From Ylistrum balloti (Eukaryota), in NCBI RefSeq assembly GCF_031769215.1, contig NW_026781958.1, forward strand, positions 620,001 to 684,000: a stretch of 64,000 bases of DNA, read 5' to 3'. The notes under the pieces were generated by a model. The model searched no databases. It was given only the letters and a program-made list of their open reading frames with translations, and was not told the DNA's origin. This document shows positions 18,601 to 21,600 of the stretch, piece by piece (position 1 is the stretch's first letter; each line of letters starts with the position of its first letter). The position numbers were made by a program, and so were the translations under genes.

Positions 18601-21600
18601 CTGGTTGGGACAGCTGAGGCAGGGATAGGGTTACCAACAGCCGCAGGGAAAGATAACTGGAGAGGGGAGGAGGTAAGGGGGCCACATAACCAGACTTTAA
18701 AAATTATTTGTACTTCAGAACCATGAATCAGCACCAGGCATGGGATACAGTGCTAACCAGATTTAATGATAGAGAAGGAATCCACTTCACACTTGGTACA
18801 GAGGGAATAAATCGGGAAATCGTGAGAAAATATTACCCGTGGTGAAATAACACGCAATACATTCACCTTGATTCTGATCACAATGTTGATACATTTAGTT
18901 GATATATCTCCAAACAGTAAAAACATTGTTCAATTTATCAAATCGAGTAAAAAGCAGGGTGAACATCTGTGGAAAAAAACCTATTTCATAGTTACTCCTG
19001 ATTTTTCTTTTTCCTTTAAAAAGATATATCACTTAACAAAACGAAAAGAAACTAGAGAGATTGGGATATAAATCAAACAAACAAAGGATTTCGTGTAAGT
19101 CTGCTTCTTCATTACGTTTTTTTTTTAAATTCTATCAAAAATATTGTAAACCCAGTGTTCGTAGTTCATATTGTCACAAGTCATCTAAAATACTAGAGTA
19201 TTTTCAAAAATTTAAAATTAAATAGCGAAGTATTCATAACATCACTTGACTAAAAAACTATATTTGTTTTCAACTCATACTTTAACAATCAATACGACTG
19301 ATCTGAATATTTAGATATTTCTTTGGCCTGACTTGGAACATCCAGATTTCCATGTACAATATATACATATACCTAAGACCTGGAGGTTGGTGTACATACA
19401 CTTTAAAACTTACATGTAAATATATGTCATTTATAGAAATATGATGTTTAAGGTAATATCGTATGTATACACAAAATCATAATTAATGAAAGAGCACAAA
19501 TAACCCAGATCTAAATTGGTAAGTGAAGTCTGCTATTAATAAGCTGTGACATTATCTCCACTACAAACGCATTTGTGATCATTTCCCTCGACACCGAATC
19601 GTAGCAGCAGAGGTACACAAAATAGAAATGAAAGTTTGACAAGCTCCGACATTGCACATGGCACAATAGTAACCCTCAATAAATGTGTGTTAAGGATGCT
19701 ACGGCGACTATTTGTAGATGAGTTTTTATTTTACTTCTGACACACAAGACCATTTTGTTATTCAATTTCCACGCACACTACACAGTTGGTCCACGTTGTC
19801 ATGTACTGGACCAATAATCACCGCTGTGGCACAATGGCAATGTAATTACACGCTTATCACCACGGAGACAATTAGCCAATCAGCAAGGCACTTACCCATA
19901 TGGAGATGTATAGATATCCTCTTCCTCAATACTACAATTATTGGAATCCACACCATAGTCATAATACTCCATCATCGATCATTCATAGGGTAGCAGTTAG
20001 TGTTTCCCTCCCCGATATTCCTCCTCGACCCAGTAGCGACAGACTAGCTTACCCTGGTCCTGATGCACTACTTCTGCCATGTGGCAATTACCTTACCACA
20101 TTGATCCAGTTTCCCAAACCCCCTCAGAGCTGTGTCAATTTCACTTCACTGGCCTCTACACTAGGAAACACTACACCAGTCCAAACACACAACAAATGTA
20201 AGATCATCCAAGCATTCAGCTAATCACACTAAAACAGATTTCTTATTATTTTTCAATAGGGATTCCAGTATATCAGAATTATGTAATTTCTGACGACAAC
20301 TTCGCCTGAAACTGATGCTGTATGTATGTATAGCTGTAACACATACACAAACCTATCAGCATGCCCAGAATATCAAATCAATGATAAGTCCATGATTTCA
20401 AAAACAAATGTTTCACTGATTAGGCAAGACCAATACAAAACAAACAGGACATTTACTAAATATTTGTTAGTTGGATTTTCCAACTATCCGTGTAAATATT
20501 GATTCAAAAATACAGGTAATTAATGCAACTGGTCAACTGATCTCTACAACTTATCTACATAAAATTACCTAATATCAGTATTTAAAATTATCTTATATAC
20601 TTTATGATATGACAATATATATAATCTGAATATATATCTGTCGTTATAGGAAAGGTTTAAATATCATTGTACTCTTATTGAAAATATATATCTTATTTTT
20701 TCTACTAAAGATTTTGACATCAAGTTTCAGGAATAAGATTCACAAAAAGCCTCTTTGTATAAAAATAGCAGTAATGAGTCGAGCAGACCCCTTTGGTCAA
20801 GAGTAAACATATCTGCTAATCTAATGTGTACCTATAAACATGCATGTAGTCCATTTTGGCTTATTACAAAAGGTTTAGCACTAATTGGACTGGCAGTATC
20901 ACCTTACTTTATCCAAGATAGGATAACATGGGACCTACAGTATATAGGGTATACATGGGACCTACAGTATATACGGTATACATGGGACCTACAGTATATA
21001 GGGTATACATGGGACCTACAGTATATACGGTATACATGGGACCTACAGTATATACGGTATACATGGGACCTACAGTATATAGGGTATACATGGGACCTAC
21101 AGTATATACGGTATACATGGGACCTACAGTATATAGGGTATACATGGGACCTACAGTATATACGGTATACATGGGACCTACAGTATATAGCGTATACATG
21201 GGACCTACAGTATATATGGTATACATGGGACCTACAGTATATACGGTATACATGGGACCTACAGTATATACGGTATACATGGGACCTACAGTATATAGGG
21301 TATACATGGGACCTACAGTATATAGGGTATACATGGGACCTACAGTATATACGGTATACATGGGACCTACAGTATATACGGTATACATGGGACCTACAGT
21401 ATATAGGGTATACATGGGACCTACAGTATATACGGTATACATGGGACCTACAGTATATACGGTATACATGGGACCTACAGTATATACGGTATACATGGGA
21501 CCTACAGTATATACGGTATACATGGGACCTACAGTATATACGGTATACATGGGACCTACAGTATATACGGTATACATGGGACCTACAGTATATACGGTAT

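Follow-up and report, generated by a model that had tools for sequence, protein, structure and literature searches.

A probable alternative first coding exon of the Ena/VASP gene of Ylistrum balloti, predicted to place an acidic, tyrosine-rich tail before the EVH1 domain

We ask here whether a short open reading frame (ORF) deep within the first intron of the Ena/VASP gene of Ylistrum balloti is an alternative first coding exon, as an earlier note on this DNA had proposed, and what the tail that it would encode might do. The window is the whole stretch analysed, 64,000 nucleotides (nt) with zero N (contig NW_026781958.1, positions 620,001 to 684,000), and coordinates refer to it unless another locus or contig is named. 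Ena/VASP proteins have a central part in the elongation of actin filaments and form a family in which alternative 5' exons are frequent; Ena itself came to light through a genetic interaction with Abl. We call the frame exon A and place at about 0.85 the probability that it is a true alternative 5' coding exon of the one Ena/VASP gene in this genome; we take it to be real and not a chance ORF because it is spliced in two relatives and because both its peptide and its nucleotides are conserved. The segments on which this reading turns are as follows.

19896..19975, minus strand: coding part of exon A, 26 codons plus GG, ending in phase 2; contigs X1 and X8, described below, leave their match exactly at 19896.
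19890..19895, minus strand: 5' splice donor GTAAGT of exon A, the junction used in contigs X1 and X8.
7066..7231, minus strand: common exon 2, which encodes the first half of the EVH1/WH1 domain (WH1 E = 7.5e-11) and occurs once in the genome.

Exon A (19975-19896, minus strand) reads ATG ATG GAG TAT TAT GAC TAT ... TCT CCA TAT GG, and exon 2 opens at 7231 with T GAG GTG CCC ATA GTG after the acceptor ...ttgattgcag, so that the GG of the one and the T of the other complete a Gly codon and the frame continues EVPIV. In-frame TGA and TAA triplets lie directly upstream, and 19975 is thus the first in-frame ATG, with the second ATG of the main frame having the better context (A at -3, G at +4). 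The peptide is 27 residues long including the junction Gly, with 5 Tyr and 7 Asp/Glu. The sequence, the GTAAGT donor and the phase given in the earlier note were exact on re-reading, as was its count of five tyrosines, while its six acidic residues must be corrected to seven; its offset of about 9 kb into a 22-kb intron agrees with the 9.1 kb and 21.8 kb that we measure. It had also cautioned that phase-compatible donors arise by chance, and ATG-started open frames that reach a GTRAGT donor in phase 2 do number six across the whole of intron 1. Exon A is the sole one of these with a length of at least 80 nt, a count that is suggestive of a real exon, yet insufficient alone to dismiss chance; it is the transcript and conservation evidence, and not the ORF count, that rules out the chance reading.

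The junction of exon A to exon 2, which the earlier note had sought, is present in contigs X1 and X8, both from relatives. A search of sequencing runs with 19860-20300, in which the run types are guesses ('RNA?'), returned one strong holder, X14, with 0.80 of the words and probably DNA, and thirteen further runs with 4-13% of the words, the share expected if some 80-90 nt were present. Four runs were compared with 18000-21400, the results being contigs and not reads, all from relatives, and each gave one contig, which within these 3.4 kb covers exon A only. Contig X1 (151 nt) matches 19896-19983 without any difference, and its next 25 letters find their best match at the exon 2 start at 7231 (22/25, all differences synonymous, EVPIVTAR). 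Contig X8 (198 nt) aligns to 19896-19986 with a single insertion of 3 nt, and the letters that follow agree at 29/29 positions with the beginning of exon 2 in Argopecten irradians (EVAVVTAKA). Both join exactly at the predicted donor, and they represent two organisms and two studies. Contigs X2 and X7 read through the donor into an Argopecten-like intron and, because both cross it in this way, represent unspliced RNA or DNA. A retrocopy is ruled out as the source of the joined contigs, since the 648.5-Mb assembly contains one copy each of exon A and exon 2; for these searches the window exons were used singly, and the joined form was studied in the database protein P0153 alone.

That protein emerged from a HMMER search with the exon 2 peptide against 1.84 billion representative proteins, followed by cluster look-ups. 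It is the VASP-like isoform X2 of Argopecten irradians (XP_069117282.1, P0153), and it opens with the exon A peptide plus one His, followed by EVAVV. It is orthologous, and identical to the window in locus position, in the 27-residue peptide, in the 80 coding nt, and in donor and phase, but differs in having an extra His codon after MMEYYD and in that its exon A lies 5.1 kb from canonical exon 1, as against 9.1 kb in the window; it is a computational RefSeq model and not a characterised protein. Isoforms X1-X4 of Ruditapes philippinarum open MMIDVMNDNMYATIHDMEDEDPYTTPYG-EIPIC (...EDEDPYTTPYG), and isoforms X1-X5 and X7 of Dreissena polymorpha open MTTMYPYMAGADSWYQDEEDPYTSPYG-EVPIC (...DEEDPYTSPYG). 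These counterparts, compared as protein only, resemble the exon A tail in being 27-28-residue alternative N-termini that end PYT[ST]PYG before EVH1, but their N-terminal halves are unrelated in sequence and they have Pro for Ile before the Tyr. The core common to the bivalve tails, directly before EVH1, is [DE][DE]ED[IP]YT[ST]PYG, and both Y-T-[ST]-P and the terminal P-Y-G are kept in all four bivalves, which belong to two subclasses. The ena/VASP-like protein of Aplysia californica (XP_012937173.2) opens MYGGYGPPDQEELDDSFEDNGPNAYG-EVPII, and its tail (...FEDNGPNAYG) is equal in ED-to-YG length and in acidic character.

As these alignments show, exon A is older than the split between pteriomorph and heterodont bivalves, and its age may be greater still. 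Computational RefSeq models of other bivalves already include its orthologue. As protein queries, the first 40 residues of P0153 returned no homologues (isoforms are hidden within 90% clusters), and residues 1-83 returned only EVH1 fragments with an unrelated N-terminus; a literature search found no paper describing the exon A isoform. The central claim of the earlier note, that exon A is an alternative first coding exon and joins exon 2 by splicing, is thus borne out by the spliced contigs of two relatives, the identical Argopecten isoform and the Ruditapes and Dreissena homologues. The note had pointed to predicted mollusc Ena isoforms as a place to look, and these carry the full peptide in Argopecten and its core in Ruditapes and Dreissena; it had also held that absence of the peptide or donor from related genomes would tell against the exon, and the exon, donor and phase are identical in Argopecten.

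The gene to which exon A belongs extends beyond the window. The translations of exon 2 and exon 3 together span positions 10-110 of the Pfam WH1 profile, as expected of an EVH1 domain, and VASP_tetra has one match in the genome, on the minus strand of the same contig (C101:611285-611368), 8.6 kb beyond the low end of the window in the gene direction, which supplies the EVH2 tetramerisation segment. This is a complete Ena/VASP gene, and the sole one found in the assembly. Its remaining exons in the window, in the direction of the gene, are these.

29034..29038, minus strand: coding end of the canonical first exon, ATGAG, with donor GTAAGT; gives M-S-E; orthologous to L003:4855-4859 in Argopecten.
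12399..12499, minus strand: exon B, alternative first coding exon, MCDRW...NMED-(I), donor GTAAGA, phase 2, intact.
9870..9901, minus strand: exon C, alternative first coding exon, 11 residues plus (S), donor GTATAG, phase 2, intact.
3468..3637, minus strand: exon 3, second half of the EVH1/WH1 domain (WH1 E = 3.2e-17).

Exon B shares 88/98 nt with the exon that opens the coding sequence of Argopecten isoforms X1, X3, X4 and X6 (MCEKW...), and exon C shares 27/32 nt with that of isoform X5 (MRTPDRKSAYS). The gene has at least four alternative first coding exons, namely the canonical MS exon, A, B and C, all of them closing in phase 2 and leading into the common exon 2. In the RefSeq models, which are computational predictions, the isoforms of Argopecten, Ruditapes and Dreissena have one first coding exon each. 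An ATGTG followed by GTAAGG near 20090 was a candidate for a fifth first exon, of 'MC' type, and was dropped, Argopecten having GG in place of GT.

The order of elements in the Argopecten locus L003 is that of the window: SRP9 head-to-head, then the canonical ATGAG exon, A, B, C and exon 2. In BLASTN of the window against L003, conserved blocks follow one another collinearly along intron 1, and within this chain 19986-19807 aligns with L003 9990-10168, which establishes the orthology of exon A at the level of the locus. The head-to-head pair itself (window 29034-30474; L003:3278-4859) is common to the two species, with SRP9 exon blocks 84-91% and the promoter block 74% identical. About 20 non-coding blocks of intron 1 (8600-23400; for example 23330-23185, 18819-18502, 15139-14917, 13743-13589 and 9362-9202) are collinear with Argopecten at 72-90% identity, despite divergence of about 50% at four-fold degenerate coding sites, and these may be enhancers or further exons. 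A repeat of at least 100 letters, composed of short words occurring more than 12 times, lies at 21407-21648.

The degree of identity over exon A is unusual for this pair of species. Exon A matches L003:10001-10083 at 80/80 nt with no substitutions and one 3-nt codon indel, whereas exon 2 matches at 130/166 nt (36 differ), exon 3 at about 91%, and exons B and C carry 10/98 and 5/32 substitutions respectively. For contigs X1, X2 and X7 no substitutions are listed in exon A, only an inserted codon at one place. The window's species and Argopecten are not closely related, because between them four-fold degenerate sites differ at 14/20 positions in exon 2 and 5/18 in exon 3. Among codons for the same amino acid, synonymous change is seen at 28/99 in exons 2 and 3 and at 0/26 in exon A (P ~2e-4). 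Perfect identity extends beyond the coding part over the 11-nt leader and 13 nt of the intron, and the next ~80 nt of intron are well conserved.

19976..19986, minus strand: conserved 11-nt 5' leader, identical in Argopecten.
19807..19889, minus strand: conserved intron flank after the donor, part of a 185-nt block 87.6% identical to Argopecten.

Two short upstream ORFs, both out of frame, run into the beginning of exon A, at 19986-19972 (MNDR*) and 19982-19959 (MIDDGVL*); the first ends within the sequence ATGA, where its stop overlaps the main ATG. The intron flank contains two ATTGG (inverted CCAAT-like) motifs on the minus strand, at 19881-19869 and 19819-19807. A structured RNA, microRNA or small nucleolar RNA as the cause of the nucleotide conservation is unsupported: no Rfam family matches the exon A region, and its RNA fold is weaker than that of shuffled sequences (z = +1.83), with no stable structure predicted. 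What constrains the synonymous sites may be control of splicing or translation, or else a promoter-proximal DNA element.

What, then, would the tail do? AlphaFold2 was applied to residues 1-142 of Argopecten isoform X2 with a 36-sequence alignment that is shallow for the tail, and it gave a predicted local distance difference test (pLDDT) score above 90 for EVH1 and below 50 for tail residues 1-22, which are not packed on EVH1. The exon A tail is thus predicted to be intrinsically disordered, and this weak evidence, given the shallow alignment, leaves a tail folded back on EVH1 unsupported. A disordered tail fits a short linear motif held on a flexible leash beside the first EVH1 strand, and a candidate for such a motif lies near its end.

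19901..19915, minus strand: I-Y-T-S-P codons, a candidate Abl-type/YxxP motif; Argopecten, Ruditapes and Dreissena all retain YT[ST]P.

The Abl consensus I/V/L-Y-X2-3-P/F has been applied in a review to Y39 of VASP (IYHNP) (PMC10340426), and IYTSP of exon A conforms to it. Human VASP Y39 and the exon A motif are alike in protein family and in the form I-Y-x-x-P (PMC10340426), but Y39 lies inside the folded EVH1 domain, whereas the exon A motif, a candidate site only, is on a disordered tail encoded by an alternative exon. When the peptide is shuffled, [ILV]YxxP arises in 2.1% of trials, and together with an acidic run in front in 0.07%. The terminal Y-G-E-V context resembles a Src-type site. 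An EEED sequence before Tyr suits Src-type kinases, pYxxP suits Crk/Abl-type SH2 domains, and the genetic link between Abl and Ena in Drosophila is established. The assembly has a single Abl-type F-actin-binding domain (PF08919, 81.9 bits; G000:C53:531326-531643, minus strand), which closes an open frame of 807 residues, presumably the final exon of an Abl orthologue.

Extensions before EVH1 are present in other animals also. Those of fly Ena proteins (Drosophila ficusphila, D. ananassae, Glossina, Haematobia and Bactrocera; P0109, P0277, P0110, P0116 and P0131) all keep I-Y-E-A-P, and an amphioxus isoform (P0236) has V-Y-S-S-P eleven residues before EVH1. In fly isoforms such as D. ficusphila X4 and D. 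ananassae isoform C, alternative 5' exons add a Tyr-rich extension before EVH1, as exon A would, but the fly extensions are 140-390 residues long, Gln-rich and without alignable similarity to the bivalve tail. Many alternative N-termini of insects (P0200, P0202, P0196, P0280) end ...SWEDYWAC before EVH1, and that of the hemichordate Ptychodera (P0248) ends ...HEVHYYDY. The [ILV]YxxP of fly, amphioxus and bivalve tails may reflect convergence, ancestry or chance.

The interpretation that we advance is that exon A is transcribed from its own start within intron 1, and that the resulting transcripts would exchange Met-Ser for a 27-residue disordered, acidic, Tyr-rich tail on the first EVH1 strand. 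The own start seems to us probable. We propose more tentatively that the tail is a short linear motif in which the YxxP and YGEV tyrosines would be phosphorylated by Abl/Src-type kinases and/or read by SH2 domains, and that this would alter where or how EVH1 engages its ligands; as a phosphotyrosine motif with this effect, it is a possibility that we rate somewhat below even odds.

A number of observations count against one or another part of this interpretation. The run search turned up no RNA run from the window's own species (X14 is probably DNA), and the types of the runs that gave the contigs are only guessed to be RNA. For the own start, the observed/expected CpG ratio at 19800-20400 is at background (0.32-0.39), against ~1.0-1.2 at the canonical promoter. 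In Ruditapes and Dreissena the residue before the Tyr (-1) is Pro and not Ile, so that the strict Abl consensus is not conserved, and the Aplysia tail has no Tyr at the IY position; the fit to an Abl site in the earlier note accordingly holds for IYTSP itself and fails for conservation of the strict consensus. The full synonymous conservation of exon A also hints that part of the constraint is on the nucleic acid and not on the peptide.

The strongest alternative accepts exon A as real and its role as conserved, but the role is not that of a phosphotyrosine switch: the tail would tune EVH1 electrostatically or engage another partner through its PYG or acidic-aromatic patch, or the conserved function would lie at the level of DNA or RNA (alternative promoter, upstream ORFs, splicing or translation control) with the peptide secondary. 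We regard this as a serious possibility, only a little short of an even chance. The residues kept most widely are the acidic run and the final YG, which Aplysia has too, and not the IY; the acidic-aromatic endings of the insect and hemichordate N-termini are of the same kind; and the lack of synonymous change over 26 codons, with a conserved leader containing upstream ORFs and a conserved intron flank, is what a nucleic-acid function would leave. Set against this are the invariance of Y-T-[ST]-P in four bivalves of two subclasses, the AlphaFold2 model in which the tail is unpacked on EVH1, and the lack of a stable RNA structure (z = +1.83) or an Rfam match.

A second alternative concerns the start of the transcript, and proposes that exon A has no promoter of its own and lies internally in the 5' part of the transcript, joined by splicing to a non-coding or canonical exon before it. 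The CpG ratio at exon A, which is that of gene-body background, is in keeping with it, but the region upstream of the ATG is not, and we consider this arrangement distinctly unlikely. The match of the contigs to the window ends at 19983/19986, and contigs and window diverge farther upstream; contig X1 nevertheless continues 38 nt past 19983 without a joint, and X8 continues 75 nt past 19986, of which the 30 displayed upstream letters are 30/30 identical to, and collinear with, the Argopecten genome. Upstream of the ATG, the spliced contigs thus follow the genome for at least 41-86 nt without a joint, and just upstream of exon A there is no AG preceded by a pyrimidine tract. Were the canonical ATGAG spliced upstream, its ATG would come first. 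There is in addition a conserved block farther upstream, which we take as a candidate core promoter or leader element, its promoter role being suggested by position and conservation.

20074..20111, minus strand: conserved block ~100-135 nt upstream of the ATG (window 20120-20074 versus L003 9858-9905, 85.7%).

The CpG ratio, whose window median is 0.32, rises to 0.63-0.97 at 18800-19800 and to 1.0-1.2 at 29000-29800; these may be unmethylated regulatory regions, the latter at the shared Ena-SRP9 promoter.

That in the window's species the stretch is a conserved intronic element only, with ORF and donor unused, is very improbable: the splice evidence does come from relatives, with no RNA evidence from this species, and six phase-compatible ATG ORFs with good donors arise in intron 1 by chance, but exon A, its ATG context, donor and frame are intact and identical to exons spliced in two relatives.

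For exon A as a genuine alternative first coding exon, the consequences are in part plain and in part speculative. For annotation, the gene has at least four alternative first coding exons and an intron 1 that is dense with conserved elements, and the absence of any synonymous change in exon A is a minor riddle in itself. A broader proposal, which we think unlikely but worth stating, is that alternative first exons gave Ena/VASP a disordered [ILV/P]-Y-x-x-P module before EVH1, repeatedly or since an ancient ancestor, that this would act as an isoform-specific Abl/Src-Crk/Nck switch, and that in scallop-like bivalves exon A, constrained at all its synonymous positions, would double as a nucleic-acid regulatory element, for control of translation or splicing or as DNA close to a promoter. 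If so, the switch would have been overlooked because the vertebrate and classic fly isoforms are without the [ILV/P]-Y-x-x-P module. The control of Ena/VASP by tyrosine kinases is still debated, and a tail that appears to have been conserved over hundreds of millions of years may offer a concrete handle on such control in invertebrates.

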